Assembly: GCF_052425735.1 (NCBI RefSeq)
Contig: NC_135760.1
Location: forward strand, 13,330,001-13,394,000
Length of the DNA: 64,000 nucleotides
Origin: Oculina patagonica
Taxonomy: Eukaryota
Direction of reading: 5' to 3'
A program made the translations under genes and the position numbers. This document shows positions 7,151 through 33,200 of the stretch, one piece after another; position 1 is the stretch's first letter, and each line of letters starts with the position of its first letter. The notes beneath the pieces are model-generated. The model worked only from the letters and a program-made list of their open reading frames with translations, made no database searches and was not told the DNA's origin.

Positions 7151-7329
7151 TTTCTATTAACACAAAAAAAAAAAAAATTTTTTTGTTAGTTAAAAAAAAA
7201 AATAATTCTAATAAAAAAAAAAAAAAAAAAACGGGGGGGCCCCCCCCCCCCCCCCCCCCTTTGTTAAGAGAGGCATTTTAAGGGTCACAAAGATCTGCTC
7301 TTTTGCCAACTAACTTTGCTTACACATGC

Positions 7330-7575
7330 CCCAATATGCGTAGCCTACATAAAAATTTAAAACATCGTCAATGACCTCGCTCAATGACCTCATATTGACT
7401 GTTAAAGAAACTCCAGAAATCATAGCTATATCGGAATATGTGTTTTTGATTAATAATTCACCAACTAGAGCAGGAGGTGTCGGCCTTTATATTTCTCAAG
7501 AATTGAACTTCATTAGGAGGGAAGATCCGGAAATAGCTAGTGACGGAATAGAATCGTGCTGGGTCGAACCCTTTA
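7330..7575 (+). mobile_element. Degenerate LINE (CR1/L2-like) apurinic endonuclease fragment
   Basis: Translates to NMRSLHKN..PEIIAISE..RAGGVGLYI..IESCWVE, typical APE motifs. Truncated. Confidence 0.7.
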
Positions 7576-7607
7576 ACTGCTAAAACTAATGCTAGCAGTG
7601 GTTTATT

Positions 7608-10600
7608 TCACACTCCAACAATTTTTCCTGTTGACTTCCCTAACTGTTTCAGTCTGTAATACTCTGATAGATCCTTGGACTGTACCATGGTGCTTCTCTT
7701 TGGATGAAGTTTTAACTTTTGAAGAGTTTCTTCAAAATATTCAGGCAGAGGTGCCTTAATTATAATATCCCTTCCGTGATATAAGTTTGGTAAAGTTAAC
7801 TGTCTTGCATGTAGATGGAGAGGAATGAGTGCTCTTTGCCACTGTCTTATCTTTCCTTTTGCTTTGGGATCTTCCCTGTTTTTTGTACCTTGAATCTGAA
7901 GAAGCTGCAGTAAACGCAGGGGTAAAACCTGTAAAAGAAAAGTTTTAATATTAAAACAAATGATTGAAAAAGCAGTTTCCCATTACATTTCACAGTGTTT
8001 GCTCCACTATTGGCTCAAAGTACTTCTACATGCTTTGCACTGCATTATAAAATGATTTTTTATTTTAATAAATAATCAATATCTTACCATGTCTGGCCCT
8101 ATCCCCCACCCGGGGGTAAGAAAATAAGCATCATACCATGTAAATAATGTCTTCTTGATATCAGCTAAGCTTTTAGAGCCCTTCTATACCTTTATGAGAA
8201 AACCTATTGCCACGTCAGATGCAAGTATTCCTGTGATTTCTAAGCCACAATTAAGTACACCTATGGTTTATCAGTCAGAGTATAGTATGCCAGTGATTGA
8301 TAAGCCACTTGTGAAGACTGGGTATACTTTTGGTTGCTAAGCCTTAGGATGGTATACCTGTGGTTGATAGGACTGTTGGTTTTCAAGCTTAATACACATA
8401 ATCCTTGCTTAAAACTGATATTCCTAAATCTGATAATTCCATTAATGCTAAAATCTGAGTTTGATATACCTGTGGTTGACGTAGATCAGAAGAGAACTTA
8501 TGATCTCCCAGTATCGGACATTTCAGTCCTTCTGCTGTGTGTACTCTGATTTGCTGCTTTAGTCCTGTAACTGGCTCCAGTTGTAACAGAGCACATGTGT
8601 TTTGATTTGTGTCCAAAATTTTAAATTTTGTTTTTGCATTTTTGAAGCCAGCAGCACTTAACACCTGAATTAATACAAAAAAAGCATAATTTTCACATTA
8701 AACACTATCAAATTTTAATTCAAAATTTGTGAACTTGATAACCTAAAGAATCTAATGCAGTGCTTTAATGAGGTGTTTTAACCAAAAAAAGAGGTGTTTT
8801 AACCAAAAAAGTCTATTTTCTAGACTATTAATTTCTAGAATTTAGTTACTTTGAACTTACTTTAAAAAAAAAAAAATGATGGTATTGTTTAGATTGCATG
8901 CTTACTTTTGCCTTTCTACACCTTAAAGGGCATACCTTATTATAGGAATATAACAAAGCATTTTAACAACCCGAACAAAATTTACGCGTAATAAAATTAA
9001 CGCGAATTTAAAAAAAAAGTTCTGGTCAAATCCTTATAGTAAAAAAGACATCGTCAATGAAATTAACGCAAATTTTTTAAATTCGCGTTAATAATATGTA
9101 TCGTTAATTTCCTATAATAAGGTAACATAATTCTGCAATCCATATGATTTGCTTAATATTGTATTTCTCTTGTAAATAATGTTTGTATCACAAGATGAAG
9201 TAGATGTACTATTTAATTTAAAAAAAAAAAACAATACTGTATTTCGCCTGTGAACATTTCAGCACTCAAAACTGTGCCAAAAAAGTTAACATCGCTCAAG
9301 TTGCTTTATCGCAACAGTGAATTTAATTTAACTGTCATAATTATTTTGCATTGCAACATTTAACTATAAATAATTCCCATACTTCAAAAGACTTGCCAAT
9401 CAGATCAGTTCTGGTAACAATGCGATGTCCTCCAGGAAGTTTACGCTCACCAATGGGAATATTGATTTCTCCTGCTTCAAATGCTGGTACTCCAACAGTT
9501 ACTGCCCAGTACTGTTTAGTAATTGTCCTATTGGAGAACATTTCTGCTATCTTTTTGGCTGCACTTGCTGACCTAAAATAAAAATACTGACAAATATTAA
9601 AATTTGATTTGTAATTTTTTTGGCAAACAAAACAAACATACAAACTTTTTGAGCAAAAAAGGCTATTAAAAAACTGTTGATAATCAAAATACAATCAAAT
9701 ATAAGTACCGGGTAATCAAAGACAATCATAGTTGAAAATAATATTAACCAGTACCTTGTGAATAACAGAGTTCCACTGCAGTCCCTGTAAGTACAGCACA
9801 ATAACATTCAACATTTACTTTGGTTAAAAAATTGTTGCAAATTTCAAAAGACTCTAATTTTGTGGTCATGTAATGAAACTATTTCCACGCAGCTTGAAAA
9901 GATACCAATTCTAAAATGGCAACTACTTTCTGACACATGTCTTTCATGTGGGTACCCTAATAGCACTGGGATAACTCTACAAATTGTCCTTTTACGTTTT
10001 AACAACCTAAGGTGGTACCAAGCCAAATTGATTACTAAAGGAGAATCCACCTGAGCAATCTTCTGATTAAAATTCGGGCTCACCACTTGTTTTGTTTTTC
10101 TGATTTTTCAATACCTCAGTGATTGTTTGCCATCCTGCATTGTAAGCTAGCAACAGCTGCCTTAAAATTCCTCGGAATTACAACAAAAACAATGAAATAA
10201 CCTGTCAAGACAGTACATACTTATCAAGTCGATGTGCCAGCTCTGGTCTTTGCTTTAATTTTTTTATTTCTGTAAACTCATCAAGCATGTCCATAATACA
10301 CATCTTTACACCAGGACCCGCTTAAAAACAAAACATAGATGCAAACAGTCTTTTTGGTATTTACATGTATTTTTTATTTTATTATATAAACTGATATGGT
10401 ATAGCGAGTGGTAGCAAATCAAGAAAAATGGAAATGGTATCACACATGTGTGGATAAAAATGATATCCACACATGTGTGGTATCATTTTTGACCAATCAG
10501 CTCGCAGAGTTTGCCGTGTTTCAATGCTCAATAAGCCAAATTTTATCGACCCCCTTTTCTCTCAGAATTTTCAATGATCCTCCACTGGGGATGGAGGGGG

Positions 10601-11979
10601 GTATGGATATTTTCTGGAGGCACACATTTGAGACTTTGCAAGAGAGCAAAAGTGATGTATTGGAAAGACAATTCATTACCCTTGACAAACATGACTATAT
10701 ACTTTTGGGACTTTTTTATGAAAAATAAATGCTGGATTTAAGCTTTAAGAGCCTGAAGGGGTAAAGTGGGAACTGGGATTTGGTCAAATTTTCACTGGGA
10801 AAATGGGATTTGGATCGCCGGAACTGGGATTTGGTCACTGGGTATGGGAATCACAGACAGAAAAACAATAGAACTGGGCCTGGGATTGGAAAAGCAATAG
10901 GCTGAAAAAATGAGATGTAGGTAAAATTTGGGCTGGGAAAATGGGATTTATACCCAACCCTCTACCCCACTTTAGGACCTTCCTTTAACACTTACAGTGC
11001 ACTGGCAGTCCATATGGTTTGTTCACTGCAATAATGTCATCTGTAGAAATATAAGAGAAACATGTCTTTGAATACAATTTTTAAAATTTAAGCTTAATTA
11101 TCTCTTTATAAACTGAGGGCTGCTACCAGTGAGCCTATGATTTCACTGTGTATTTTGTTCCCCTAGCTAGGTCGACCCTAGGTCCCAAGCGAAAAAAAAA
11201 TTGAATTAGTGTCTTCTTGGTTTAGATAGAATGTTGTTGTTGTGCAGTCTTGCCGTTATTAGGGTCTGTAGGCCGTGCTAGTTGGCTAAATTCCCGGGGG
11301 GGGGGGGGAGGGGTACTCCCATAAATTTCGGATAGGGGTGTGCCGCCAAGGTTCTTAAACCCTGACCCTATTTAAGGATAAAGAAAGCGAAAATTGTTAC
11401 CCTTTTTAAGGCCCAAAACCGAAAAATGACACCCTATTTAAGGGGAGGAGAAACGTTCCGTGACGACCCAAATAACGGCTAACCACGCACGGCAAGACAC
11501 AAATCTTTATAAAATCGCTTTTCTAATACCTGAACTGAAAATTCAGTTTTCAGATATCTTTTTCTCGTTTAGCTGGGTGTTTATTTTAGCTAATAGAATT
11601 TAGGTACCCTATCTAAGGATCACAGCGGGAACGCATTGCCAAAAGGAGCAAAAATGATACCCTATTTAAGGACCGAGAACCTCAAAAACCATACCCTATT
11701 GGGCGGCACATACCTATATAGGCCACATATGGGAGTACCCCCCCCCCGGGGGGGGGGGAAAATTAGGGTAAAAGTAGCAGTTAATTTAAACCATGTGCTG
11801 CACAAATTTATAAATATGTTGGCGATCGCACAACACAGGCAAGCGATATGGCACTACGCTGGTCAATGCCTGTGCAAACCATACTTACTGTTCATAAAAA
11901 TTACACTGTCCGCTAAGAATTGTGCATCTATGACAGTTCTTCCCAGAGCTAACCTCGCTGTCTTAGCTGCTAGCGCCAT
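7608..11979 (-). CDS. RluA-family pseudouridine synthase, RPUSD3/RPUSD4-like (probably mitochondrial)
   Basis: Exons 11979-11889, 11040-10996, 10320-10221, 9784-9755, 9572-9383, 8664-8470, 7928-7608. Motifs NKPYGLPVHSGPG, HRLDKDCSG (catalytic Asp), KQYWAVTVGVP, QIRVH, PILGDHKF and LHLHARQL. Confidence 0.88.
8935..9122 (+). mobile_element. Short TA-flanked MITE; same family as 23771-25081 and 41448-41633
   Basis: ta|ccttattataggaa ... ttcctataataagg|ta with internal aattaacgcg repeats. Confidence 0.8.
11293..11758. mobile_element. CCC..GGG MITE in RPUSD intron 1
   Basis: cccggg(G)n-tactcccata ... tatgggagtac(C)n-cggg; internal accctatttaagg repeats; related to 32662-32971 and about 63520-63671. 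Confidence 0.7.
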
Positions 11980-12138
11980 CTTGAATCGCTCTTTAACCTA
12001 ATGACACTTTAGTGAGGGATACATAAAGTATTCAGTAAATTAAGTATACATAGCGTCGCATACATGAATCACAAGCATGAAGGTTAGGTTCCAAGCTCCA
12101 TACCGCGCACACGGCACACGTGCGTTTTGCGAATAAAC

Positions 12139-15002
12139 ATGGCGAAGAGCATTCGGTCGAAAAGAAAACGAAAACTTCGGGCTGCAAGGAGAGAAAAATT
12201 AAAGCCAAAGGTGAAAGCAAAGTTGGAGGAGATACTTGGAATAACTGACAAGGAAATGATCGTGGATACAGAGAGCCGCGAGGAAGATAAAAACGAAGAA
12301 CAAGCACAAAGAGAAACGCAGGAGAATGAAGAAGACACGACAGCTATCGGTAAGACTAAGAGATTATTGAAACAACAAGTCTAAACAGAACTAAACAAGT
12401 GAAGACTAAGGGGGAGGAACTTAACTTCAAAACAGTTGTTAAGGATGGCTTCTAGGGATTAGTTTTTGATCATGTTCGTTCTATTGGAGATTACCAGAGA
12501 GATTGCCTTTATTTTCGACAGTCATGACCATATTTGGTAAGTCACGTGACAAGAACACAAAAACCTTCAAAACTCACATAGCTTGCTTGAATTTTTCTCC
12601 ATTGAAATCAACACCGCGGGTAGAGTGCATTTAGAAGCAAAATCTGCAGCATGGATTTGTTAAAATTCGTGTTACTTAAAAAACTATGATGTCATTAAGT
12701 TTTTGTGATGTCATAACTTTAAAAATAATGTTAACACTTTTCCACTGGATAGTGATTTATCCAGTGAATAGCTTTATCCAACCTTTGAAAAACTGGGTCC
12801 TGGTTAGAAGCCCTTTCCACACTCCCCCTTCCAACATTTGGATATTTATACCAACATTCTCAAAGAGCAATGAATTTCAAAGAGTTTGCTTACAGAAGGT
12901 CAACCCTCCAAGTTTCCTTAGTGACCATCTGGCCACTGACTGCTAGGTTTGGTCGGCAGTGAAAAAACTTAGTTGCTAAATAAAGCTCAAACTTTCAATG
13001 CTTCTCAATTTTAGTTACCAGGCTGGCGACTTGGTTCCAATTTAGTCGTCAGTTCCAAAATTTTAGTCGCCATGGCAACTAAAATGGTCTTAACTTGGAG
13101 GGTTAAAGGTGTCTGTTGGAAGGGGTTCATAAATAATAATATGATATAATATAATAATAATATTATCTGTACCAGTTGTTGGCAAATTCCAGGCTCCAAG
13201 ACTGGTCTTAGCCTGCAGTTTTGTATCAAACTGATTCTGCAAACTAATAGACCATTTGCATTATGACGTAAAAGCACAAAGACTTCTGGTAGTTGTAGTT
13301 AGGTTCGCGGGAAAACACAATTTCTGGCTTATGATTGGCTAAGGGTAGCCAAGCGTGAAGGTGGCCATCCAGGACTTTTATTTTGATCTGAAGTTGAGCT
13401 GCTAAGATTACGCTCTTGTCGCTTCGAAATTAGTTTATACATGTATTTTTTCAGTTACCTGTCAAAAATATAGAAAACAGGATTATATCTTTGGAATGAA
13501 CTGATTTGACTGAGTTCTGTGTTTTAACCAAGACAGACAAATGTTGTTCGTGTTCAAGTAAGTTTAATATGTACGTTGTGTGGCGGAGTTGACTTGGTAG
13601 AAATTCATTCATCGCGGCCGACAACTTCTCTTCGTAAATAATTTTAGCCTAATATCACAGCTTCAAAAAATCGTGCACTGGAAACAGATTGCTTGAAAGG
13701 ACGAGTCGAGGATATAACTAAATTTGTGTGGAATCAAGTGAAAGCAAGGCAAACCATTCACTTTGTTCATCATCTATTTTCAGATGTTCAACAAACGATC
13801 GCTTCCATCGATCGCAGGTGAATTAATTCTTCACTGAAAAGCTTAGAAAATTTACCGTATATCATGATTGCTCGGCGGGATGGTCAGTTTAATTTGTTTT
13901 TACAGTGAGACAGAGAAACGAGTCAAATAATTTTCCTCGTTCAATCGAGCTTCATCAATGAATCATGAAGGGTCAATCATAAAGGATTTTCAAGCTGATC
14001 AATCAAAACTTCCCTGTGCAGTTGAATACAGATTATTTGTTTTTATCTTATATCTTAAAATTGTATTTTTTCGTCAAATTGGAACTGTAATTGCAATATT
14101 CTTTAACAAAGAAATTTTCTTGTTTTTGTACTGGAAATGTCAACTCGTCGAGTAGCAGTTGTGGTTTCAATCCGAGCGAGGGCCGTGCGAGCAAATATAA
14201 TTTTATTTCCATAATCTTGTTGATGAACGATTACTTGCGCGACTCGAAAGGTGAGCCTCAAAGATTTTTACGAGTGTAGACATCATGTACTGTACTCCCC
14301 CATGTTTAGAAATGGTAAAATATTGCGTCTTCGTATATTATTTGAAAATACCTGGCAAGCAAAAGTTTTACTCAGGAATTTAAATAAATGACCACGCTAC
14401 TGAGACTCGACTGGAGGAAACACTCGTTGAAACTTCACTACAAAACGCAACCAAGCAAATATACAATTTCTTGCATAACTTTTTTTCATTTTAACGGACT
14501 TGGTTTTATACTGAGAGGTTGCTTTTGCCCTATAAATGAAGCCACGGGGACGTCTTCTTCGGTGAGAGTAATTTTCTTTACCTCCATGACTATTTTCTTG
14601 GGCAAGCGGGCTTGATGACGATTCAAAATTTCCCGCGAACTTAACTACAACTACCAGAAGTCTTTGCGCATTTACGTCATAATGCAAATGGTCTATTGTG
14701 CCATGCTGATGTGGTAGCTTTTGAAGTACACTCAAGTGCTTGCTTTATATTTTGTCTGGATAGTAAAATCAGAATTTAACCAGCACTTTAAAGTAGTGGA
14801 ACTGTATAATCTTGCAGGCATTTTTGAATTTAATTATTGTGTTTTTACATCAACAGAAGTTACAGAGGATGTTGAAATGAAATCTAAAGATGGAACACAG
14901 AAGAAACTTGGGAAAAAAGCACTCAAAAAAATAAACAAGAAAAGGAATTTGAAAAGACTCGGAAACAAGAAAAGAAAAAATCAAAAGATTTTTAAGTGGT
15001 GA
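12139..15002 (+). CDS. LLPH: Protein LLP homolog (LAPS18 family)
   Basis: Exons 12139-12349 and 14857-15002. MAKSIRSKRKRKLRA N-terminus and basic C-terminus ending in FKW. Confidence 0.88.
13249..14694. mobile_element. 1.45-kb non-autonomous TIR element with AT target duplication, in LLPH intron
   Basis: About 60-bp TIRs agaccatttgcattatgacgtaaa..ggttcgcggg / cccgcgaac..tttacgtcataatgcaaatggtct, flanked by AT. No transposase ORF seen. Confidence 0.8.
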
Positions 15003-15842
15003 CTTTGGTAGAACTTTTGCTGGAAAATTTATAACTGAGTATCTGTACACTAGACAACAAAATAGGGGAAACATTCCTGTCAATTCTTTACACAAGTTTC
15101 CACTGAAATTACAAGACCTTGAATTTGTACATTTTAATACAGAAAGCTATAAACCTGTTTCTCTTTCTTTTGTTTCATTGTAACCATCTTGAAATTCCAA
15201 GGTGAAGCAGAGTGACTGCTTTGGCCATTGGGTACATTAGGGTGTACATAGAATTTATAACCAGAACTCTTTTATTGTTGGTATAACTTGTGCCATAACA
15301 AAGTAATGGCTTTGTTACTTCACTACTGAATGAACGATATTTATTTCAACTTAGCTTGATAAACAGTATCGGTTCCTGACAGTTAGAGTTCAATGTAAAG
15401 GCATTTGGTAATGTCGATGGCACCACACCACTCTTAAGAACGCATAAGATTCCCACCCCCGCATTCATTATACATTTTCTTCCCCCCGAACCGCGCCCCA
15501 CCCTCCACACAAGCCGCCCCCGCGGCGGCCCCCGCGGGCGGGCCCCCGTCCGGGGGGGGGGAGGGGGTGGCGAGTAACGCGAAGGTGTTCTTAAGTGATG
15601 ACATTTGTTTTTAAAATTTAGAATAAATTATGGTTTGTTTCTTTAGTGTAGTTCTGAAAATTTCATGGTACGTCAATGCAATACACCTTAGTCGATGATT
15701 TTATTTAGAACCATCCCAGAACACCCCACTGATGTGGAAAAAAGAGAGATGTTGAGCACCACTGGAAAGCAAAGGGTCTCAAGCCAACAGCTGCTTGTTA
15801 TCAGACCAGCAGTGCTAAATCTCGTGATCACTGCAGCTTTCT

Positions 15843-17981
15843 TCACTTCAGTTCTTCAAGTGTATTGATCATCATATATCTGGAAAATATGATGTACAGC
15901 TTCCTAAACCAGAGCAACTGACTTCTGTGAGCATACATGGCCTTCTGTTGACAAAATGTTCAACATTTATGAGCCTTCAATTTTTTAAGAATTTTATATT
16001 AACTTCAGAAAATTCCAAAAAAACTTCAGAAAATTCAACCAACCTGTGCTAAAAGGATGTCTTGAGGACTTGACAGAATCATGTGTCTAAAGTAGGGTGA
16101 GAGGAATAATTATTATTAATCTGAAAACTAGTTTTCTAGCTAGTGATAACATGCTCCCTCTAAATATTCTGACAGTTATTTGACTTGAGTTTGAACTTTC
16201 TGGTCACATGATCAACTGATACAAAAGGACTACTCTACACTGAACACGTCCTAAAACTGGATAATGGAGAAAAGGGTTTTACTGTTGTAAGCATTAAAGA
16301 TGTAAGAACCAGACAACTCAACCAGTATCTAAATATCTCAATTCCTTTCCTGCCTCAAAAAGAATAAAGGAAATTGAGACATCTGCAAGCAGAAAACATT
16401 TACATTTTTTATTAGTTTTACTTACTGTGAATGGACACTGAATGGAAGATCAAACAGTGAGATGTATTTCCTCAAAATGCTTATGCTACTGAGCATGTAA
16501 ACTGTAACATCTTCAAGGAGTCCTTCATCTTTCAGTCTTTTTATGGCTTTGTAGATGGCAATGTGGTTTGTATGGCCTGACACCCCATAGGAATCAAAAG
16601 TAATGACCTATTTTGTGAAAGCAAAACCTTGTCAGGAGAGCAGCTAAGATAACAGTCGCATACCTCTTCCTCCTGCTTAGGTGTTACCTTAGTATTCACT
16701 TGTATGTGTTCAAGATAATCTTTGTCTGAAATATTTCATAATGACTAACAGAGGACATATATTTTATTGTTTTGGCCCCAGTTGTTTCAAGGATGGATAA
16801 TGCTATCCACTGGTATGTTTTGTTAGCACTTATCTACTGGATAGCCATTTATCGGGTGGATAGCGTTATCCACCCTTTGAACAGCTGGGTTCTGGTGTTT
16901 AACCACCCCCCTCCTGCACGCCAACTTCTCTTTTTTACACAGCACTGGATCTTACCACTTGAAATTGGTTGTGTTTGATATGATCAGCAATTATTCGACC
17001 AGCAATCTTAGCATCCCAGGCTACCTTGGGATCATCGGGAAGGTAACTGAAAGAAAGAATTTAGAATGGAATAAGATGACAACAAAGTAAAACATGATAG
17101 AATATTCAAATATAAAGATCAGCAATTATCTCTTGCTGAACCCCAGATTATGAACAACTTCTCGAACAATAAAATGGAAATCCCAGGGTCTCAAAGGGGT
17201 TCAGCGTTCTAAAGCTCTGGGGCCTTCAAAATTTCAAAAGCAGGGCTCCCAGCACTGTGGCAATAGTTTTGTAATAGTTAGGGTTGGAGCGTAGTGATCA
17301 TTAAAAGGATAGGGAGCCTCTGCTGCAAAATTTTAGGGCCCTAGGTCCTAGCCCCCCAAACCCCAGCCCACCCACCTTTAGGACCCTAAATTGCAATGCA
17401 TATCTCAAAATGGTTTACCGGTGATCAATAATGGTCACATGATTTGATGGAATTCCAAGAATACTGCAGCTTGACAACAACTCTTGTTTTCGTAAATCGC
17501 CTTGTTGGTAAAAATTGCCTGTAAAATAAAATGGTCACGAGTAAGTACAGTTGCACAATCACTAATGTAGTCCTTATGGCTTATCTTGGAAAAAATGTAA
17601 ATACCCTGGGGAGTGGGTTGGGGTGGGAAATGTAGGGGGAGAGGGGTGGGGTGTTGCAATTAAAGGGCTTCACAACTAACGTCTAAGTCACGATGTCAAT
17701 CAAACCCTGAAAGAAAAACCTCAGTTTTTAACAAACATACCTGTAGAGAGACACAGTAGATGCACTGTGCAGCACCGCTGAAGATTCAAAATGGCGGGCG
17801 AGAAGAACATACACTCGTCATCTGGATGAGCAGTAATGACAAGAACATTTTTCTTATTAAATTCGAACTTCTTGTTTTCTTGGAGTTTTAACTGTCTACT
17901 GTAGAAAATTATAAGAAAACTTGACAAAATAACAACGAACAGAGAGAAAACTGAAATCCAACTCAGTTCAAACGGAACCAT
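15843..17981 (-). CDS. PIGL: N-acetylglucosaminyl-phosphatidylinositol de-N-acetylase
   Basis: Exons 17981-17741, 17518-17419, 17046-16956, 16607-16426, 16086-16044, 15944-15843. N-terminal TM segment, [23 protein letters not shown] and [18 protein letters not shown]. Confidence 0.95.
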
Positions 17982-18134
17982 CAGTGTGCGTGGTTACCAA
18001 GTAAAAATTGCCTGGCTACTAAGCGATTCTTTCACTCGGTATGACCCTTTTGTTATGGTGTAAAAATGTGATTGTTTTGTCGTGATTTTTGTTTTCTTGC
18101 CTCTTTTAATACTGAAAAGAGCGATTTTTATACA

Positions 18135-21100
18135 ATGGAGAATGTAGTTCCTTCAACTGCAGAAGAAAATGACGCGGAGAATCACGCAAAAACCAACGGT
18201 GAAAAGGAAGAGTTGGTGCAGAGCGGGAACCCTGCTAACTTCGTTATTGACCACAGTAATAACGTTACTGTCGAACGCATAGACTATGATACGGATGTCG
18301 GAATCAAGAAAGAGGATCGTCAAGAATTCCCAGTGGATGAAGACGAATCTTTTGGAGAGGGAGAGCCCCAAGAAGACGACTCTATGTGCACTCACAAGGA
18401 AAATCAGGGCCGTAAAAACATTTCCACGCTCACTTCAAGACACTATGCTGGTCACGTAAGGGTCTTCAAAGGTATCGTACATAGCTTTACAACTTGTTTG
18501 TATAAATGTACAGCTTTTCTTTTTATATTTATGAGAAAGGAGCGGAGGAATTGAAATCACTGATCTTCAATGAAATGGAGTGGTCAAGATTGATTTAGAT
18601 TTTTGTTTAATGAATTATGCATTGGCTTCTCAGAAGTTTGAGTTAAATAAAAAAAACTGACGGTGGTGTTACAGACAACAGATTTTTTTTTGCGAAATAG
18701 TTGTTTAAAAGACATGAAGAGCAACAAAGTAACATGGATTAATCTTTAGGCTAGGTGGGACAGGCAAACTATACTTCAAACAACATGCTCCTTTGCACAA
18801 CTAGGAAACTGTAGAGCATGTTGCTTGTTATGCACCTACCTATGTTAATGGGGGGGGGGGTCGGGCATTGAGTGGGGATTTTGACATTTTCTTTAAATAA
18901 AGGCAAATTCCCCACCCCCCAGGACAAAATAATTTGTCAAAATCCCCACCCAGGGGACAAGGGAAAGTGGTCAGATGTTCTTCAAACCTTGTTGCAGAGG
19001 ACCGCTTATGATCAAAATCCCTACCCTGGGGACATAATGTATGATCAAAATCTCTACCCTGGGGACAGACATCAGGATCAAATTCCCATGGTATGCCCGA
19101 CACCCCCCCCCCCCTCGGGCTTAACATTGGTAGGTGCATTGTGTACTATGAATAAAGAAAAGTGCTTATAGTAAAATTAATTGAAGCACCTAACAAATTA
19201 GCCTGTGAACAAGCTCCTCAGTGGGATATGGGGCCAAAAAAAATTAGTGAGTGCTCGCTTGGTTTGCCCTACTTGCCAATTTTGTTTTGCCCCTTTGCCC
19301 CACCGTGACTCTGGAGGCAAACGCAAGCCACTTAACAAATTACTGATATCTCTGAGTGGTATCCTTTTCATGTCTTATATCACAGAATGGTTAAAGTGCA
19401 AAGGAATGGACGAAGAATTTGAGCAGTGGGCACCCAGGGAGATTAGCAATTGGTTGTCTGACTTTTACAAGGAATCTCACTTAAAACATGGTGGAACCAA
19501 GAGGGCCAGCTCCCTAAGAATCATACGTTCAGCTATAGATCATCACTTAAAGAGTGCACCTTACTGCAAGTGCTACAGTCTGACTCATTCTCCTGAATTC
19601 AGCAAAGCTAATGCTACATTGCATGACTTGGAGGCTGCGCAGAAAGAATACTTGGATTCTTCAGATTGCAATACCAGTGCCTTACCTTTAAATGTAGATG
19701 AAGTACGTAAGCTGTGGGCCACTGGAGTTGTGGGAATCAAAACTCCTAAGTCTCTACAGAGACTGGTGTTTTTGGCTGTGGGAATCAATTTTGGTGTTAC
19801 TTCCAGAGATGACTTGCGTGATTTAAAACCTGACATGTTTGAATTTCACATTGACGAGAAAACAGGCCTTGAGTATGCGGCATGTAAACTGGACGAGTCA
19901 ACTTCAGCTCAGCTGAGGAGTAAAAGATATAAATGTACTGGAAGGAAAATGTTCAGTGTACCAGGAAGTCTGCAATGTCCTGTTGCAGCATTGAAATTGT
20001 TCCTTAAAAGGAGGAATCCTGCTTGTAGTGCATTTTTTCAAATACCAAACCGTGACTTTGCAACAAGTGGAGTGTGGTACAGGTCACAAGCCGCTGGGCT
20101 TAACTGTTTGTCTGGCATGTTAAAAGACATGTCACATGAAGCACTCCTCCCGATGGATTATTCCAATCACAATTTGCGAGCCACACCTCCTATTGTGTTA
20201 TACAAGGCAATGGAGGAGATAGCAACTCTACGACCTACAAGAATCATCAATAATGCAATTCTGAACGACAAGATTGCATTAAGTAGTCCAGCACCTCCAC
20301 TGTGGAACTCAGTGACGACCTCACCAAGTATTCCATCAGGAAATGATATCACAAATCACACAGTTGTGCCTGTTGTTGAATCAAATACTATTCAGGCACC
20401 CTCTAGAGACGCAAGCACCATTGCCAATGGGAGCAATCCATCTCAACACTCCCCCAGTTTAAATGTTCCTCAGAACTTGCATCACGTGTTCTGTATTCCT
20501 CAGCAATGGAACATTCAAGACATCATCAGAGCTGTGAACTCAGGAGATGCACTTGTGATCACAAAACAATCAAGTAAAACAGAGGTTCAGCCCCATGAGA
20601 ATGGGGACATAACACAATCCAGAGATGCTCATCAACAACAAGCTAGTGAGGTGTGCCATAATGTTGGACGTGACAGATCTGGTCGTAAACAGGTATATAT
20701 CAGTAAATGTATATAGACATGTAAAAGGTGACAACTTCAACAACAAAAACAACTTTATTTGTAATAAAAGAATAAAAATTATGCTGTGGAACTTTAATTT
20801 ACAATTTGCATTCGAGCCTAGTGGTTTACCAGGCTGAACAGGGCTGAAACGAGACCTTTGGCATAGATAAGGCAAGATCTTACTAGGAGCTGCAAGGGGC
20901 ATGCCCTTCAGAAAATTAGAAACTCTGAAACAAGTTTTTATACATTTTGTATAATGTATTTCTTAAAAAAAATCAGTCTTGTTCAACTCGGGGCTATTTT
21001 CTTAACTTAGCATGAAAGAAATCTAGATGAGGCAAGTGCCTTGTCTTGCCTCTTGATAGTTATGGCCCTCCTGAAGCTTATCCTGGTTTTCATAGCATGA

Positions 21101-22424
21101 TGCAACTAGGTATATTTCCACTCCCTCCTGGATGGGATGCTATTCAATACCCCATTCCTTCTATAGCGTGCGCCTGCAGGGAATCACAGTAGTTGTATTC
21201 AACAAATCATGTGCAAGACTTAGAAACATGCATCGTTGCTGAGTCTCGCACATGGTTTGATGAATACAACTACCGTGATTCCTTGCAGGCGTGCGCTATA
21301 GAGGGAATCGGCCATTGCAGGGTTACTCCCAGCATTAAGTTTGCTGGTACTCATTTATACACCTGGATGGAGGGGTAAAGTGTCTTACCCAAGAACACAA
21401 TGCAGTTTCCTGGCCAGGGCTCAAACCCAGACCACTTGATTTGAATTCCAGTGCACTAACCATTAGGCCACCATGCCTCCCCCAAGACATTTTCATTCCC
21501 TACATTAATCTCTGCAGCAGCAAGAACACAGGATAAGACTCTTATCAAGATCTTAACAAAAAGATCTTTGTACATTCTTCTTACTGGTCTCCATCACAGT
21601 GGGGAGAATTTGCTCAATAACTGGCAACTTTTCTTTGATTTGTATTAACTTCCATGGTTCTTTTTGTATATGAAATAATTTATGCAGCATTTTTTCACTG
21701 TCTGCATTTTAGTGCATACTGGTGCAACTTAATGCTTTGTATCATTGACAATTGATGATTTGATATCAAGCTTCTTTTTATGTTTTCAAGCCTGAGCCCA
21801 AACGGTTACGTAGAGACCCAGAGGTGATCAAAGATGAATCATTCAAGGTAAGAATACTCTCCTCAGTTGCACAACAACATAAAATGAACATACAAATTTA
21901 AGTTTGCAAGGGCTTACCTGTGTCACTACAACACTCTAAAAACTGTCCCCCCCCCCTCATTTCCTGCTAGACACTCAAAACAAATGCGCCATTTCCTACA
22001 TCTCTGAAAATATGTCATGAAATCATGAAGCACAGAACAAACCACTTTATCATTCTTTTTCCTCACAGAGCAAAGTCTTGCAACTGTGAATGTGTTTTAA
22101 CTTTTCAGTCACTTGCAACCCCCCTGTGTGGCTATCAAAATGAAAGCTATCAATTTGTACTTTCTTGTGGTAGTTTTTGGTGAATAAAAGCAGAGTTGAG
22201 TAGTATTAGGATATACAGGGAAGTGAAAGATGATAATTGGTGTATTCCAGGTTGAAGATTCCTATGTGAAGGCAATAAATGGTATAAAGACAGGTCTTCA
22301 AACCTTGGATAACCTTGTATCTAAACAGCAGCCTTCCAACCAAGTTATTCAAGAGTTGTCACATATAGGTGACAGCATTCAAGACCTTCTGCAAAGGATG
22401 AACTCAAATGAAAATAAACAATAA
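18135..22424 (+). CDS. DUF3504 / Crypton tyrosine-recombinase-derived protein (QRICH1/ZMYM/KIAA1958-like domain)
   Basis: Exons 18135-18471, 19386-20692, 21791-21847, 22251-22424, in frame with GT-AG. Motifs WLSDFYKE..SSLRIIRSAIDHHL, CPVAALKLFLKRR, AFFQIP, VWYRSQAAGLN and YSNHNLRAT. Confidence 0.75.
18831..19138. mobile_element. Harbinger-type MITE; second copy at 43606-43897
   Basis: TIR tgcacctacc(a/t)atgttaa; the second copy has a clean TAA TSD. Confidence 0.75.
21075..21482 (-). mobile_element. tRNA-derived SINE interrupted by a palindromic MITE (about 21154-21308)
   Basis: Reverse complement resembles the SINE at 51351 (tRNA-like head, cttgggtaagacacttt..ccaggtgtata). Nested IR attccttctatagcgtgcgcctgc / gcaggcgtgcgctatagagggaat. 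Confidence 0.7.
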
Positions 22425-23414
22425 TATATTAGAGTTTATTTCCTTGGAAGCTGATCTGTCAAAATATATTAAGAAAACTAACCTGCCAAACTGCAAACCA
22501 AGAGGCTTTCACTGCAGTTTATTTTTTGTTTACTGGTGGTAGTAAATTCTTATTAAGTTTTCTTATCACTCTTACTTGGCTAGTTGTGGCAAAATTTTAA
22601 GGGAGCCACCTTTAAGTGAAACTTGGACAAATATGTTCGAGTTGTTTAAATTGATTCAAAGTATTTATAGTGGACCTTAGATGTAAAACAAATACAAGTA
22701 TAAGAGGACTCAACTGTCTTTAACTAAAGTCTTAAGCCAAAAGTTTACAACCGTATGTCCACTTAAATCTAACAAAAGAGTTTTTTAATGAGATGTAAGT
22801 TATTAATATGATGGCCACATATGTGGTATAAGTTATTTTTACTAACTCGTTGTTTGTATGGGTACTTGGATCATAGAAACACATCAAAGCTTTTTACCTC
22901 AAAGGTTCGTGAAATTTACAGTTTTATATTTATTGCCTTGCCTTGCACTTGCATTTCTTAAGATGTTGTCAGTTTCATTATTTATTAATTAATTGCAAGA
23001 AGTCCCTTTAAGAAAGGTTCAGCGTAGAGATTTTCTTGAATTTCTGATTGAGTTTGTTAGACAACGTTGTTATGAACATGTTTGCAGGATAAATAGAGGT
23101 GCAATATATTCATGAGTTTCTATTGTGAGGTGATTTCCCTTACATTTTAGAATCCCTTTGTCCAACACATATTTTAATAGCTTTCCAACTTTGTTACAAG
23201 TGGTTCATTTTCAAAGAAATCGCACACGGCTCACATTACTCAGTTTTGACAGGTTTTTAACTACTTGGAAATTAGGTCTAAACACCCCCAAGACGAAACG
23301 CCCCTGGGAGTTTTACGTGGAAAAAGCTTACTTGAATACTTAAATACTCGGTGTGACACGTTTTTACAATGAGAAATATACAGCCAGTTCTTTTCCTTGA
23401 GGGATGTTGCTTTC

Positions 23415-25081: not shown

Positions 25082-25560
25082 TATAAGGAAATGTTACCGA
25101 GTAATCGTGTTACAGTTCAGATGCCAACTGTTTGTACAAGCTGACCTCATCAACCCTTCAAGCTTTCCCACTTTCGAACTCAATTTCGACCCCGCCCCTG
25201 ATCGCTTGGTAGCACAGGCTACCCAGACATGTAGCATCGCTTGGTAGCACAGGCTACCCAGAAAAGTGACAGGTCTCTTACGCCTCTCCACTGCTAGTGA
25301 ATAAAATAAACTCAAAAAGGCCATAATATGAGATAATAACTTTATTGAAATCATTGGGAGCCGCCACATAACAGCTCCCGTAAAGAATCTTTGCAAACAA
25401 TTCGTACATTGCAATTAAACACAGTACTATTAAAAGGGCTTGAGCTGAAGACGTACCAAATAATATACAGTTAACAAGAAAAAGATATCACTGCCGTCCA
25501 TACTTCACGATTATCAAAGAATATTGTATTACAAAGTCCACACTGCTGTGTGACGTCATT

Positions 25561-27222
25561 CTAAAACAATCCCGTGAGCATTTGCTTTGCGACACTGAGT
25601 TTCCTGACACGTTGAATGTTATCTGTACCACGCTTACACAAACTGCCTATCTGACCAAATTCGCTTCTCTCGTTAAACACATCTGTTTTCTTTCGAAGTT
25701 GATAGATGAGCTGCAAGATAAAAATAGTAAAAGAGAGCCGGAAAAAAAGAAGATGCACATGACACGAGCATGGGACAAAGAAAATCGAGCCCCGACGGGA
25801 CGAACCCTGCCCCAGATACCGGGGGCGCCACCCGAGCCGAGAGACCGACCCTGTCCCGCCTGTCAAAACATCACAATTACCGAGCAAAACCATCAACCAC
25901 TGATGAATTCGACATGCTGACCAGCAGAGGGACGCGTGCCACAACCTAGTAAATGGCCCAGCCACACGAGCCCGAGCTCAGGGAGAGCGCCCCCGGCGGG
26001 GGCCAGGGCGACCGCGGGGACCAGAACTTGTCCCATGCTCGTGTCATGTAGAACATCTTATCTTTATTAAGATAAAAATACATTACATGATCCACCATTT
26101 AGTCTCTTAAACGGGGGAAAAAGGGAAAATGATATCCACGGAAAACGGGATGTTAACATTTAGTTCCTAAGCTCCTAAGGCGTCGACACGCTCCTTAGCC
26201 CTAAGACACTAAGTAAGAACCATACTAGGAAGATCTAAACTAAACTAAACTAAACTGATCTAAACGAAACTTTAGGCGGGAGTTAACATAAAGTTCTTTT
26301 TTCTGCCGCTTTACGTGTTGTTTTTTTTTTGGAAATATCCGTCACTTATTAAGCAATGAAAAAACCCTATGCTCGTCCCATAAATCTATGTTTAGGGGTG
26401 CTGTGTAAATATTTTGGTGATTTTTGGAGATTTTTGGGAGGAGATAGTTTTTCTTAAGAGTGGTAAAATTTAGAGAAATAAGAAAATAAGAAATATTGAA
26501 GATTTGATGTAGTTTTAAAATTAGAATTTGATGTTAAAGATTAGTAGACGGACACCAGACAGTCCCCTTACAAACTGGAGTGCTCTTGCGTGGGGGTCAA
26601 CTGTCTGTTAGTGTTCCAAAAATAATTTTCTTCCTTTTATTCCTCTTATAAATTACTATAGATTTCACTAAAATTTACGTTAAGTCCCCCCTTAACTAAA
26701 CAAACAATTGTAACTAAACTAAACTACAATGGGCGTCAAAAGTCTTGAGACAGTTGGATGAAATTGATACTAATTTAAAATTCCCGTTTTTTCACCTTTA
26801 ATCTACTGCCGCTTCTGAACCACTCCCCCTCCCCCTTTTCAATGTTGTACCAAACGAGGCAGTCTCGCAGATAACAAATACAACATTGTTTCGGGGGGAG
26901 GGGGTTATATTGAAGGGGTGAGGGGCAAATTTGTCCAAGGTACTCAAAAAGTGCCGACTGTCTCAACACTTTTGGCGCTCATTGTAGTAGCCTGTGTTGA
27001 GGCTGCTACTCCTGGGATGGTGCTGTGACGTCATTTCGATTTAGCGGAAGATGTTGAGATGTTTCCTTCAGTAATGACAATAATGGCAGAAGTTCTTTGT
27101 TCTATTTGTTTGGTTTTATACTAATGTTCCACGAAGGAGAACATATCTTCGTTGTTTTCGCTCTCCCCGGGTTCGGTTTTTTTTTCTTTTTTTAAGCTTC
27201 AGCGCGCAAAAAAATTTTTATT

Positions 27223-27255
<33 letters not shown>

Positions 27256-30200
27256 TTGTTAGTGCATGTGTCTTACCGCTAAGAACTCCTCAAAATCGAT
27301 AGCACCAGAGCCATCCTTGTCAATTTCATTAAAATACTGCTGCCGTACCGAGGGCTCAGAGCGGTCACCAAGGTCATCGAGAACTTGCATTCTAAATAAA
27401 GTTATCAATACATAACTCATAATGGCGTTGAAATGAGTACTTTATTCTTACTAATTTTCGCGATTTCAAAATAATCGCGAAATTTAGTACGCGCGAAAAA
27501 TATATTGCGCGAAATTTTACCACGCGAAAATTAATACCATATTTTATATCAAAACAATAAAAATGTTAAATATTTGGAACTGCAACTATCTACCTTTAAA
27601 AATATGACTAGCACCCTTCCTCTGAAAACTGTTTCGTCTGTAAATTGTTCAAAACCTCTTTAGTATAGTCACTAAAGTTTCGTTTGCAGGCCCTTAAGTT
27701 ACATTGAGTCAGACCTTGTGTATTTCCAGTGGTTCCCAGTCTTTGACGACTCATCCATAAAAACTGAAAAATCGCGAAATTTAATACATTTTTTCGCTAT
27801 TTTTTTTTGCAGTCGCGAAAATTAATACTCGCGAATTTTCGCGAAATTAAGTACGCGCGAAAACTTGTAAGAATAAGGTAATTACCTCTTTGTCTATCTA
27901 CAACGTTGCGCAAATACCACGTTTGTGACATTAAAGACAAAAAAAACTACAGTAGACTTACAGTGGATTCCCGATTTTTCGAACTTCCAAGGAGGGTCCT
28001 GGGGGACGGAGGTATAAAATCCCATTTCCCATCTAATTGTTTTCCCTATTTTTTAAATCCCATTCCCAGTTCTATTGTTTATTTGTTTGTGATTCCCAGT
28101 CCCTGTGACCCAAATCTCATTTTACCCGGGGAAAATTTGCCCAAATCCCAGTTCCCACTTTTTAAAACCCTTCAGGCCTCCCTCCAAGGGAAACAATAAT
28201 TGGTTCGAAGAATCGGGAGTTTGAAGGGGGTAAAACTGAAAAAACTGCTGTGTTCGACTGAGCGAAGCATGTCCGAGGAGAAAAGACTTTTAGTACAGTA
28301 TTTTAACTCAAGTCGAGAAATCGAGGGTTCGAGAAATTAGTATTCCGCTGTAATCAAATCGTTTGAATGTGTTACTCGAGGGTCTGGCTGAGGGTACTGG
28401 AATCTCAGGTATCAGTAACATTTTCGGTGATTTCTCAGCAAACAGTTAAAATTTCACTCAAGCTTATTTCTCGGCTATCATTGAATTTTGCAGTTCTCAG
28501 ATATCAATTAAAAATGGCATCACTTCTCATCTGACAGTTAAAATTTTCACCAAATGTCAGCTGTCAGTTAAGCCTATCCACGACCGTCTTACTCCGAAGC
28601 GCCTTCGTGCCTCATATTCGAATGCTCCTTCTTGAATAAGGGAAATGAAACCTAAGAACGCGTTATAAAGTCCTGTCAGGAATTGGTGGCAAATACTAGA
28701 GAGGTCAAAAACTTCCAAATATTTTTCTAACTTGAAATAACAAAAATAAGTATAACAACAACACCTGATTTTCAGTATCTCAATTGAATATTTATTTTTA
28801 GAAATGCACTTTCCGCGAAAATAATATTGCTGCAGAACTCCGCACGTGGACGAAATGAAGACGCAACTGGTCGAAGATGTCTTTTAGACCTGTGTCAGTA
28901 AATTTGCCGACATGGTACTAGCTCAGTAACATCAATAGCTTGTGAACAGGCTCCCAAGTGGAGCTGGGCGAAAAATAAATCGGCGAGCGATGCGAGCCGA
29001 GAAGAGCGAGCGAGGCAAGCTGAGCGTGGTCTCGAGGCGGCGCGTGGCCTCCCACGCCCCGTTCTCGGCTTGCTTGAGTTGCTTCGCTCGCGTATTTGTT
29101 TGTTCTTCTTTTTACACCCTGCCTTACTCGGGAGCCTGTTCGCAGGCTATAACATCAATAACATCTATACAGTTGACTCCCAATTCTTGGTTTTCACGTG
29201 ACGTCATCAAAATTCTAAAATCCAGATTCGCAAGGCCCCTGAGTTTTTATCCTTCACTGGCTATTAGAAGTCCTTAATACATATCCTGTTGAAGGTTTTA
29301 AGCTCGGTAGCATCCGCCGTCTTTAAGACAGAGCATTTTGACTTTCGGAGTTTCACGCCACACGACATCAAGATGGCCGCCAGAAGGCTGTCACGTATGC
29401 TTGAAAAAATGCCTAATCCTGAACATTTGTTTTTTTGCTAGAAGTGTTCATCTGAATGTTTACTTGTTCATGATGGTGATCTGACCGCTTTTTGTAGCAG
29501 AAGCGAATGCCAGATGTTTTTGTTGATTGCCGCCATGTTGGAGCCCAAGCAGTTGGGCTCCAACATGGCGTCTCCATACTGTGCTCTCTAAATTTGCGTG
29601 AAACATTTTGATGGATAACTCGAGTACTGGAATACCATACAGACCTGAGGCATGGACAAGTAGTCTATGTAGTAGTTTTTTACAACCTGATATATAATTT
29701 TGATTTATTTGACTCAATAGTTTTGGATTTATTTTTTCGTGGCGTGACAGTGAAAACCACTTATAGCTCGAACCTTCAAGACGAAGGTTCGAGTCATTGG
29801 GTGCGGATTCGAGTTATCGGATTAAAAAAAGTTACAAAGTGACTTGAAGGGGAATCCAAAAAAGGTTTGAATAAGCGGAAAGTTTGAGTAATCGAGGGTT
29901 CAAGTTATCGAGATTTGACTGTATCTGTATATTTTATAGTTTTTAAAAAGGAACATATTTAATAATAGCGATACTTACAATTCCTTGAAATCGATTATTC
30001 CATCTTGATTCAAATCAAACGTTTGGAATTGTAATCTTAAATCCACTATATCGCCTTCTTTAAATTCTGGAAATTCCTCTATTAAAGATCGGAAATCTTT
30101 TTCACCCATTTCTGAAAAAAAAGAAAAAAATGCAATAGAAAAAAAGCCCGATGTCGGCAAAAGTGATCACTCCGCAAAGCAATGAAAGAAGAAGATATCT

Positions 30201-33200
30201 AGCTTTTTATTTTTTCTAATAAATAGCCAAAGTTGCCAATTGTGAGATAAAAAAAAGTTGTATCAGGAAACGGGGCAACAATAGACTATACCGCTTCCAT
30301 GTCCCCATTAGTGGCATGTGATACTGTGAGTGACAGTGACAGTGACAGTGACAGTGATAGTGACAGTGACAGTGACAGTGACAGTGACAGTGACAGTGAC
30401 AGTAACAGTAACAGTAACAGTAACAGTGGCAGTGACAGTAACAGTAACAGTGACAGTGACAGTGACAGTGACATTGGCAGTGACAGTGACAGTGACAGTG
30501 ACAGTAACAGTGGCAGTGACAGTGACATTGACATTGACAGTGACAGTGACAGTGACAGTGACAGTAACAGTGGCAGTGACAGTGACAGTGACATTGACAG
30601 TGACAGTGACAGTGACAGTGACAGTGGCAGTGGCAGTGACGGTGACAGTGACAGTGACAGTGACAGTGACATTGACAGTGACAGTGACATTAACAGTGAC
30701 AGTGACAGTGACAGTGACATTAACAGTGACAGTGACATTGACAGTGACAGTGACATTAACAGTGACAGTGACAGTGACAGTGACAGTGACAGTGACATTG
30801 ACAGTGACAGTGACAGTGACAGTGACAGTGACAGTGACAGTGACAGTGACAGTGACATTGACAGTGACATTGACAGTGACAGTGACAGTGACATTGGCAG
30901 TGACAGTGACAGTGACATTGACAGTGACAGTAACAGTGACAGTGATCAGTGGCAGTGGCAGTGACAGTGACAGTGACAGTGACAGTGACAGTGACATTGA
31001 TCAGTGACAGTGACAGTGACATTAACAGTGACAGTGACAGTGACAGTGACAGTGACAGTGACAGTGACATTAACAGTGACAGTGACAGTGACAGTGACAG
31101 TGACAGTGACAGTGACAGTGACAGTGACAGTGACAGTGACAGTGACAGTGACAGTGACATTGACATTGACAGTGACAGTGACAGTGACAGTGACAGTGAC
31201 AGTAACAGTGGCAGTGACAGTGACAGTGACATTGACAGTGACAGTGACAGTGACAGTGACAGTGGCAGTGGCAGTGACGGTGACAGTGACAGTGACAGTG
31301 ACAGTGACATTGACAGTGACAGTGACATTAACAGTGACAATGACAGTGACAGTGACAGTGACATTAACAGTGACATGGTGACAGTGACAGTGACAGTGAC
31401 AGTGACAGTGACAGTGACAGTGACAGTGACAGTGACATTAACAGTGACAGTGACAGTGACAGTGACAGTGACAGTGACAGTGACAGTGACAGTCACTGTC
31501 ACTGGACTGGGACTGGGATTGTAGACAAAAAATAGGCTGTGAAATGGGATTTGGTACCCCCCCCCCCCTTTCAGGACCCTCATACTGGAGCATCGCAGAG
31601 CGTGCGCCCGAATACATTACATTTTGTGCTTACAGTTGAAGTTAACTTTTCCCGTTGCTTTGTGCCAAGAGTTGCTCTAACCGTAGACAGATAAAAACGA
31701 CAGTTCCTTACCTTGAAATTTTCTTCTGTTTACCGCCGATCGCCTTCTTTCTTGAAGTAATTTTTCCCAATAATGCTCTTGAATGTTTTGAAATTCTGTG
31801 TTTTTTAATTCATTTTCGCCGTGTGTTTTTCTTGTCCCTGTAACAATCAATATAAGCTTTCAGTCATAAAGTAGGTTGAGTTATTCAACTTTGACTTCTT
31901 TAAAATTTTAGGGTTATTAGGGGTTTCGTCCAGTTTCCTTACAGTAAACTATGATTTTCTCAAGTGGATAATCTTAAATGAGCTATGTCACCGGGATTAC
32001 ACAGATTTTTGGTCTAAACTGTTCTGAAATTAGTCGTAGGCAACTTAACCCTAAATAAACAGTATCTTTGAACATCTAAAGGAAGCTACGGCTATAAATA
32101 TCGATATTTCGAAGAGGCACGGAAAACGGAAACAACTTGAAAACGTTTGCCTAACTTTTTCAAATTGCAATCCGTTTCCATCCGAGCCATCTGCAGCCAA
32201 GGATGCTCGTTAACAGTTTCAGTGCTCTATTAAATATAGCAATTTTTAATAAAAATAGAGTATTATTAAAATGTTATCTGCGAGACAACTATAAATTTTG
32301 GCTGTTCAAAAATCTGTTAAAATCTGTGACATATTCGATTAAGCGCCCAACCTCGAATAAGCGCCCACCCTAAAAGTAGGAAAAGTAATAAGCGCCCAGC
32401 CCGAATAAGCGCCCACTCTCAAGGTCCAAAATAAAAGCGCCCAGGGCGCTTAATCGAATAAATACGGTAGTCCCTTTAAAGTATCTGAGACTTTTCCGCT
32501 CCCTGCTCGAAACATTTAATATGTCGGGGCAGAATAGATTGTACTTTTGATGTTTAGCTCATGTGATTTCATAAATTGTTTTCGCTTCTTTGTTTCGAGG
32601 AAAGGAGAGTGAATATTAGAGTAGCTAAACTGGTTAATTTAGATTTGAACTCACGTAAAATCCCAGGGGGGTACTCCGGCTTGTAAATGACGGGGACGAT
32701 CGAATGGAGGCAAAACTCAGGACCCAAAAAAATCCCTGAGTCTTCCGACATTACCCCAAAAAATCCCTGGACCAAAAATAAAAACCATAAAAATGCCAGG
32801 CCGTGCCGGGCACTTTAGTTAGTTTTAATAACCAAAAAATCCCCTATATTAATCAAGTCACCCCAAAAAATACTTGCCAGATTTTCCAACCCAAAAAATC
32901 CCGTAATCGAATGCAAACCCAAAAAAATCCCGATCATCCCCGTCATTTACAAGCCGGAGTACCCCCCTGGGCGTAAAATATGCCAACCTTAAACATATCG
33001 TGAAGTATACGTTGTGGTTCAATTTTTCCCTTGGTATAATTTGGTATTTTTCTTTATTTTATATTCATTATCATATATTACCATGCACTAGAACAAACGA
33101 AATTACCAAAATTGTACCAAGGGGAAAATTTGAACCACAACATAATATACATGCTAGACATTTGGCAACAGAAAAGTGTTCACAGACAGCAAAAAAGCAA

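Follow-up and report, generated by a model that had tools for sequence, protein, structure and literature searches.

A probable Crypton-derived host gene divergently paired with PIGL in stony corals and sea anemones

The Crypton-derived host genes KCTD1, KIAA1958, ZMYM2-4, QRICH1 and WOC have been reported as restricted to bilaterians or to vertebrates, and the described host genes of this DUF3504 type have all lost the tyrosine (Tyr) nucleophile and the second catalytic arginine (Arg-II); all but KCTD1 have also lost the catalytic histidine (PMC3212892). The title of PDB entry 9hjt places the QRICH1 module in Zincore on DNA (Bianchi et al. 2025, as cited in PMC13538652). Here we describe a DUF3504 gene at positions 18135-22424 (plus strand) of a 64,000-nucleotide (nt) stretch of the genome of the coral Oculina patagonica (NCBI RefSeq assembly GCF_052425735.1, contig NC_135760.1, positions 13,330,001 to 13,394,000 of the forward strand; this whole stretch is called the window below, and unprefixed coordinates are window positions). 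We think it very likely that the gene belongs to the host and descends from a CryptonA-type tyrosine recombinase, and that it has been kept as a single-copy, four-exon gene diverging from a promoter shared with PIGL since the coral-anemone ancestor or earlier. No description of a cnidarian DUF3504 host gene was found in the literature searched, and the database labels of the orthologs are only "uncharacterised" or "ZMYM2-like/QRICH1 C-terminal domain-containing". Since animals are already known to carry DUF3504 genes widely, the locus extends an existing picture without changing it: it adds a well-supported Crypton domestication outside the bilaterians that dates back at least to the split of corals and anemones, with an architecture of its own and a different pattern of losses (Tyr, Lys and His-III gone; Arg-I, His and Arg-II kept).

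Among described systems QRICH1, which forms Zincore with SEPHS1 (PDB 9hjt), is the solved structure that best matches the coral protein's catalytic-like domain. It is likewise a Crypton-derived host protein without the Tyr nucleophile and acts on DNA-bound factors without cutting, a role that the coral protein may share. The two are only 13-16% identical, however, and QRICH1 carries a CARD together with a Q-rich region and has lost His and Arg-II (PMC3212892), whereas the coral protein has HxxR, an acidic N-terminus and a helix-Pro-helix tail; descriptions of QRICH1 restrict it to bilaterians. KIAA1958, a vertebrate DUF3504 gene, resembles the coral protein in overall size, in its Cre-like module and in having no zinc fingers, but its module is C-terminal (434-714 of 716) where the coral module is central, and it is reported from jawed vertebrates only and is without His, Arg-II and Tyr (PMC3212892). 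Genes of the WOC/ZMYM/QRICH1 lineage carry MYM fingers or a CARD plus Q-rich region upstream of a C-terminal DUF3504, and the coral gene has neither. The closest relatives in sequence are CryptonA transposons (a 2.1-kb family in the same genome, below, and Nematostella Cryptons), which are 29-35% identical over ~270 amino acids (aa) and share the SAM-like plus catalytic layout and the CPV...LNP...FFQ...WY and YTNHxxRAT motifs; these are intronless and multi-copy and have K, GH and Tyr, whereas the gene in the window is unique, spliced, syntenic and without those three. The yeast kinetochore protein Ndc10/Cbf2, which is CryptonF-derived, is a precedent for the recombinase fold as a non-catalytic DNA-binding dimer, but it is a far weaker match to our model (Z 6.3-6.8), has no detected sequence similarity to the protein and belongs to a different Crypton group and kingdom.

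The gene has an open coding sequence of 1875 nt (624 aa) with GT-AG boundaries at all introns, and its four exons, all on the plus strand, divide the protein as follows: exon 1 (18135-18471) encodes an acidic disordered N-terminus plus the first helix of a SAM-like domain (…SRHYAGHVRVFK); exon 2 (19386-20692) encodes a Cre-like two-domain core (19388-20227), a disordered P/S/Q-rich linker, a conserved island and a basic end; exon 3 (21791-21847) begins with the basic cluster PEPKRLRR (21791-21814), which is like a nuclear localisation signal; and exon 4 (22251-22424) encodes a helix-Pro-helix tail of 57 aa plus the stop codon, a candidate dimerisation module. One 2083-nt RNA contig assembled from a public run covers 18024-18471, 19386-20692, 21791-21847 and 22251-22521, with exact joints at all three predicted introns, and identical exon joints are present in RNA contigs of two more runs from other studies (three runs in all). 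A spliced transcript contig encoding 599 aa was also found for the ortholog in Stylophora pistillata. The original prediction, made by a model from the letters of the window, had called this an intact four-exon gene, and the open coding sequence, intron boundaries and RNA-contig joints bear that out; the spliced contigs of the three runs and of Stylophora also answer the question of expression that it had raised. The features it had read from the translation hold as well: the N-terminus is acidic (26 D+E in 94 aa, pI 4.2, against a basic core of pI 9.0) and disordered, the P/S/Q-rich linker is modelled as disordered (predicted local distance difference test score, pLDDT, < 50), and PEPKRLRR stands at the start of exon 3.

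Exon 2 matches DUF3504 (PF12012) with 41.4 bits, above the gathering score of 29.7, in agreement with the proposed Crypton affinity, and the Stylophora, Nematostella vectensis and P0024 orthologs do so at 41-42 bits. Pfam reports DUF3504 only in the window, Stylophora and P0024 proteins, with no MYM fingers, CARD or BTB domain, as had been predicted for fingers and BTB; the anemone orthologs (Nematostella, Actinia) give a sub-threshold match to PF25561, the QRICH1 N-domain (21-25 bits against a cut-off of 30.8). An AlphaFold2 (AF2) model built with only 24 close orthologs was unusable (mean pLDDT 44.5); an alignment of 112 sequences including Crypton-type relatives gave a usable core model in which exon 2 residues 1-280 have pLDDT > 90. 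The top Foldseek match of this model in the PDB is 9hjt_H, QRICH1 in the Zincore-ZFP91-DNA complex (E 1.4e-6), followed by many Cre-loxP structures. VIA-align gives Z 14.1 for QRICH1 (148 residues, root-mean-square deviation 3.5) and Z 12.7 for Cre (236 residues, both domains), with weaker matches to Xer, lambda Int, Flp, topoisomerase IB and Ndc10. KIAA1958 leads the reviewed predicted structures (E 2e-9, 20% identity over 295 residues, model residues 1-279), followed by a XerD homolog (E 1.2e-4), ZMYM2 (16%), XerC and other recombinases, with QRICH1 (13% identity) at rank 24. These structural matches to QRICH1, Cre and other recombinases identify the modelled core as a tyrosine-recombinase fold of two domains, an N-terminal SAM-like one and one of catalytic type, and the YR-like (tyrosine recombinase-like) core of the original prediction thus has a Cre-like predicted fold. 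The conserved island HHVFCIPQQWNIQDIIRAVNSGDALVITKQ (20480-20569, plus strand), in which V, C, W, G and A are invariant from corals to Nematostella, has low AF2 confidence, and some Cre superpositions reach it (model residues up to 394). A sequence-profile search of the PDB gave no meaningful match (HERC5 over the conserved island at E 0.42 is not significant).

To map the catalytic residues we made an alignment of the protein, its orthologs and intact Crypton-type open reading frames (ORFs) from the same genome and from other phyla. Where intact copies read F-x-RRGRE, STKNH, YTNHxxRAT and GH(R/K)xxxSxxxY, the window protein reads FGVTSRDD, STSAQ, YSNHNLRAT and then an unrelated linker. The Arg-I equivalent (R of TSRDD, 19805-19807, plus strand) aligns with the R of RRGRE, and HNLR (20168-20179, plus strand), which holds the retained box II His and Arg-II, aligns with YTNHxxRAT, so that Arg-I, the acidic residue (D), His-II and Arg-II are kept. 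All 23 orthologs in alignment A1 have both Arg, and alignment A3 extends this to Nematostella and Actinostola; the box II His is replaced in four of those 23 (P0019, P0021, P0022 and P0023) and also in P0024. No ortholog, that of Nematostella included, has the catalytic Lys (STKNH to STSAQ), His/Trp-III or the Tyr nucleophile, and no aligned ortholog has a GH...Y segment after HNLR. The original prediction had HxxR (NHNLRAT) kept and the downstream GH..Y nucleophile segment absent, both of which agree with the alignment; it also had box I lost, which was wrong, since the R of FGVTSRDD aligns with Arg-I and is invariant in orthologs, and the box is altered only. Because the Lys general acid, His/Trp-III and the Tyr-bearing C-terminal segment have been lost, the alignment indicates that the protein is without the capacity to form a covalent 3'-phosphotyrosine intermediate and is not a recombinase, as its predicted non-catalytic nature would have it.

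Orthologs at 94% down to 44% identity are present in many coral data sets, and an exhaustive search of representatives delimits a tight orthogroup at or above 41% identity, below which there is a drop to 29-35%, where Crypton-like proteins of amphioxus, mussel and brittle star are found. In Stylophora the ortholog (LOC111326145) lies in the order Mnd1, PseudoU_synth, LLPH, PIGL(-), gene(+), HSCB/EF-hand(-), a block collinear with the window exon by exon. The Nematostella ortholog LOC5522246, which is a tractable model for the reuse of a recombinase fold, lies between PIGL(-) and an EF-hand gene, and the order in Actinostola is Mnd1, PseudoU_synth, PIGL(-), gene(+). The pairing together with its LLPH, PseudoU_synth and EF-hand neighbours is conserved among these three genera. 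PIGL is directly upstream of P0024 and is collinear in three further corals (L015, L016 and L023). A homology search for more taxa added one ortholog, Actinia tenebrosa LOC116288802; another, aimed at KIAA1958 and QRICH1, yielded just sturgeon/paddlefish paralogs and Crypton-like ORFs. One 54% identical ortholog (L018) showed no upstream PIGL match, but it is on a short low-coverage contig and we give this absence no weight. Single-copy orthology and PIGL synteny, which the original prediction had asked to see across Anthozoa, are therefore found as a head-to-head pairing in Stylophora, more corals, Nematostella and Actinostola. Nematostella has the same four-exon structure, with the boundaries VRVFK/DW and RKQ/TEPK and a short third exon, and RKQ/xEPK(R/K) at the exon 2/3 junction is kept in Stylophora, Nematostella, Actinia and Actinostola.

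A tree of 123 Cre-like modules recovers the orthogroup as one clade (SH-aLRT, the Shimodaira-Hasegawa-like approximate likelihood ratio test, 99), which is split into anemones versus corals plus two relatives, so the gene tree follows the taxa. Scleractinia and Actiniaria are generally dated to have diverged more than 500 million years (My) ago. The ratio of nonsynonymous to synonymous substitution rates (dN/dS) against five orthologs (dS 0.17 to 1.9) is 0.06-0.10 in the core, 0.3-0.57 in the linker and 0-0.27 in the conserved island; the core has thus been under purifying selection. On our reading, domestication had already happened by the time of the last ancestor that stony corals and sea anemones share.

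Is the gene nonetheless simply one of the many Crypton copies in this genome? A six-frame search of the 529-Mb assembly finds it once at 100% identity, with the next-best locus 33% identical, and its exon 2 DNA occurs nowhere else in the genome; at the protein and DNA levels alike the gene is single-copy, and many near-identical dispersed copies, which would have counted against the original prediction, are not what the search returned. At least 97 other DUF3504 loci are present in the same genome. These include a 2.1-kb Crypton-like family with sharp boundaries and 99.4-99.8% DNA identity between four chromosomes (L007:1069-3165, which is about 9258008-9260104 of G000:C10, and copies in L008, L010 and L011), whose ORF of 376-398 aa has the full R-K-HxxR-GH-Y set; by its sequence this family looks recently active in this coral genome. 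Additional multi-copy ORF families of 420 aa and 481 aa turned up in the same search.

The neighbor on the other side of the promoter is PIGL, whose exon 1 (17721-17981, minus strand; PF02585 at 32.9 bits against a cut-off of 28.2) has its ATG at 17981, so that the coordinates confirm the predicted 153 nt between the two ATGs (17982-18134), a spacer that serves as shared bidirectional promoter and 5' untranslated region. RNA contigs reach back to 18024 for the DUF3504 gene and extend to 18027 on the PIGL side. One RNA contig bridges the first exons of both genes, which is expected when divergent transcripts overlap at their 5' ends; contigs cannot fix the start site. The ATG-to-ATG spacing is ~136-190 nt in five corals, ~160 nt in Actinostola and ~1.1 kb in Nematostella. 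Two tandem copies of a motif derived by aligning coral spacers, CBTGGYTRCYARG, lie in the spacer at 17989-18001 and 18011-18023 (plus strand) and are the only two matches in the 64-kb window, where 0.09 would be expected. The motif is present in the orthologous spacers of L013, L015, L016 and L023, and also in that of Actinostola (L021), which had been left out of the motif derivation. By eye the pair resembles RFX X-box/half-sites, and this candidate factor is a lead, not a result. The contig ends and the conserved motif pair support the promoter sharing with PIGL that had been predicted, and the locus is a clean example of a bidirectional promoter pair kept together over deep time.

What might a recombinase fold that no longer cuts be doing? 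We propose that the protein would enter the nucleus via the RKQ-xEPKR(L)RR cluster that is conserved where exons 2 and 3 meet and would dimerise through its C-terminal helix-Pro-helix tail, which is conserved in the anemone orthologs, and that its basic Cre-like clamp could be a non-cutting module for DNA or chromatin binding or for docking of transcription factors. The models for such clamp action would be the QRICH1 DUF3504 module inside the Zincore coregulator on DNA and Ndc10 at kinetochores. The protein is probably a nuclear, dimeric, non-cutting DNA- or chromatin-binding adaptor. For the tail, a homodimer test of the 57-aa exon 4 peptide gave a score of 0.32, the best of three controls being 0.02. 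The mark used is reached by 21 of 30 proteins solved as same-chain pairs and by none of 23 solved as single chains; for eukaryotes the count is 17 of 29 (animals 7 of 16). Contact agreement among the runs was at least 94%, and partner pLDDT at least 51. This modelling supports self-binding of the exon 4 tail and does not show it.

The same observations can be read in other ways, and these need to be weighed against a host gene domesticated from a CryptonA-type recombinase. That the gene is a Crypton copy, active or decaying, which by chance sits beside PIGL might be imagined in a genome with at least 97 DUF3504 loci, including a family with the full R-K-H-R-H-Y set. It is a sequence unique in that genome, however, with three spliced introns at positions common to Nematostella, synteny conserved across Hexacorallia, a core dN/dS below 0.1 and a Tyr segment absent in all orthologs, and we reject the transposon reading as having practically no chance of being correct. 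The domesticated Crypton-derived gene of the original prediction is in this way upheld by single copy number, synteny, shared introns, core dN/dS and spliced transcripts. A more serious question is whether the gene and a DUF3504 host lineage of bilaterians (KIAA1958-like or WOC/ZMYM/QRICH1) are co-orthologs that go back to a single domestication before the cnidarian-bilaterian split. The best structural match among reviewed proteins is human KIAA1958 (E 2e-9, 20%), ahead of ZMYM2 and QRICH1; the anemone orthologs have the sub-threshold PF25561 matches (21-25 bits against 30.8); and the nearest tree neighbours, P0061, paddlefish P0072 and Mytilus P0028, are also Tyr-less, although with support of only 77-87 and in a situation where Tyr-less long branches tend to attract one another. 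P0061 was considered as a divergent ortholog and rejected, since it sits in a CEP76 intron and not beside PIGL. The coral protein is also 29-35% identical to Tyr-bearing Crypton-type recombinases as against 20%, 16% and 13% to KIAA1958, ZMYM2 and QRICH1, and it has no MYM fingers, CARD or BTB domain. The described DUF3504 host genes have lost Arg-II and all but KCTD1 have lost His (PMC3212892), and because the coral lineage keeps both it cannot descend from within them. A single ancient domestication is rather improbable in our estimation. Domestication independent of the bilaterian KIAA1958/ZMYM/QRICH1 lineages is favoured because HxxR is retained and the protein is closer in sequence to Tyr-bearing Cryptons than it is to KIAA1958, ZMYM2 and QRICH1, and judged by these sequence comparisons it is likely but unproven. 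The data are consistent with the independent, possibly cnidarian-specific event of the original prediction and stop short of proving it, the tree having been built without human KIAA1958, QRICH1 and ZMYM sequences.

A third reading accepts the host gene and disputes its role: a Tyr-less recombinase subunit could still take part in DNA transactions, as a heteromer with active Cryptons or as an occupant of their sites (a repressor or dominant negative), or by offering its R-H-R pocket in trans. The Flp active site is assembled across subunits. In the coral protein the pocket residues R, D, H and R remain under strong constraint after what, by the general dating, would be more than 500 My; active-looking Cryptons coexist in the genome; and the tail is predicted to self-associate. 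On the other side, identity with the resident Cryptons is only ~30%, the protein has lost the C-terminal helices by which subunit exchange takes place in Cre and Flp, the His varies (I, Y or N in some orthologs), and interaction with Crypton recombinases is purely conjectural. We regard such a subunit as highly improbable. The more particular idea that the Arg-His-Arg phosphate pocket has been kept for ~half a billion years to engage Crypton sites or subunits, making the protein a host guardian or dominant negative against active Cryptons, has in our view a slim chance, if a slightly better one. The retained R/H/R triad might more generally allow phosphate chemistry of some kind or a trans-acting role.

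Several points weigh against the domesticated, non-cutting adaptor that we prefer. The retained R/H/R triad is unlike that of any described DUF3504 host gene (PMC3212892). The "DNA-binding regulator" of the original prediction is itself inferred, DNA binding and nuclear localisation being predicted and any partners hypothetical. The homodimer score is barely at the mark, and one of the three runs gave 0.02. A run of poly(A) raw reads gave only 2 reads, too few to inform on expression level, strand or transcription start site. Finally, orthologs were found in Hexacorallia alone, octocorals and medusozoans lying outside the search, so that the age given is a lower bound.

Some further observations concern the surroundings of the gene and its relatives. 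The exon-by-exon collinearity with Stylophora extends over 5700-16600 and 25500-35900 of the window (Mnd1, PseudoU_synth_2, LLPH, PIGL and HSCB/EF-hand), and it is the whole block that is collinear, not the pair alone. The deposited 833-aa Actinostola model KAK3737534.1 (L021:10001-20883) has Pfam hits to both DUF3504 and EF-hand in one product; it is probably a fusion of the DUF3504 gene with the downstream EF-hand gene, an annotation artefact. Intron 1 holds a miniature inverted-repeat transposable element (MITE)-like insertion (18830-19139) with 36-nt inverted terminal arms rich in G/C runs, which has deep RNA-contig coverage that does not join to the exons of the gene. Intron 2 holds a near-perfect hairpin repeat (21145-21317; 83-nt arms, 84% complementary, with a 7-nt loop), which has an RNA-contig depth of 150-620 unconnected to the exons; this hairpin is therefore a member of an abundant expressed repeat family and not part of the gene.

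Two other groups of DUF3504 proteins came to light in the searches. In the long proteins P0032, P0047 and P0075 an ATF7IP binding domain is joined to DUF3504 and to a Phage_integrase C-terminus in which GH...Y is preserved; Kojima and Jurka reportedly predicted an ATF7IP-Crypton fusion from an intronic Crypton in birds, which these three proteins match. In the paddlefish Polyodon spathula the isoforms of LOC121303856 (P0072, P0204 and P0205; P0202 and P0203 in sturgeon) carry alternative DUF3504 modules that are mutually 46-48% identical, a chondrostean layout reminiscent of the two-isoform layout reported for KIAA1958.

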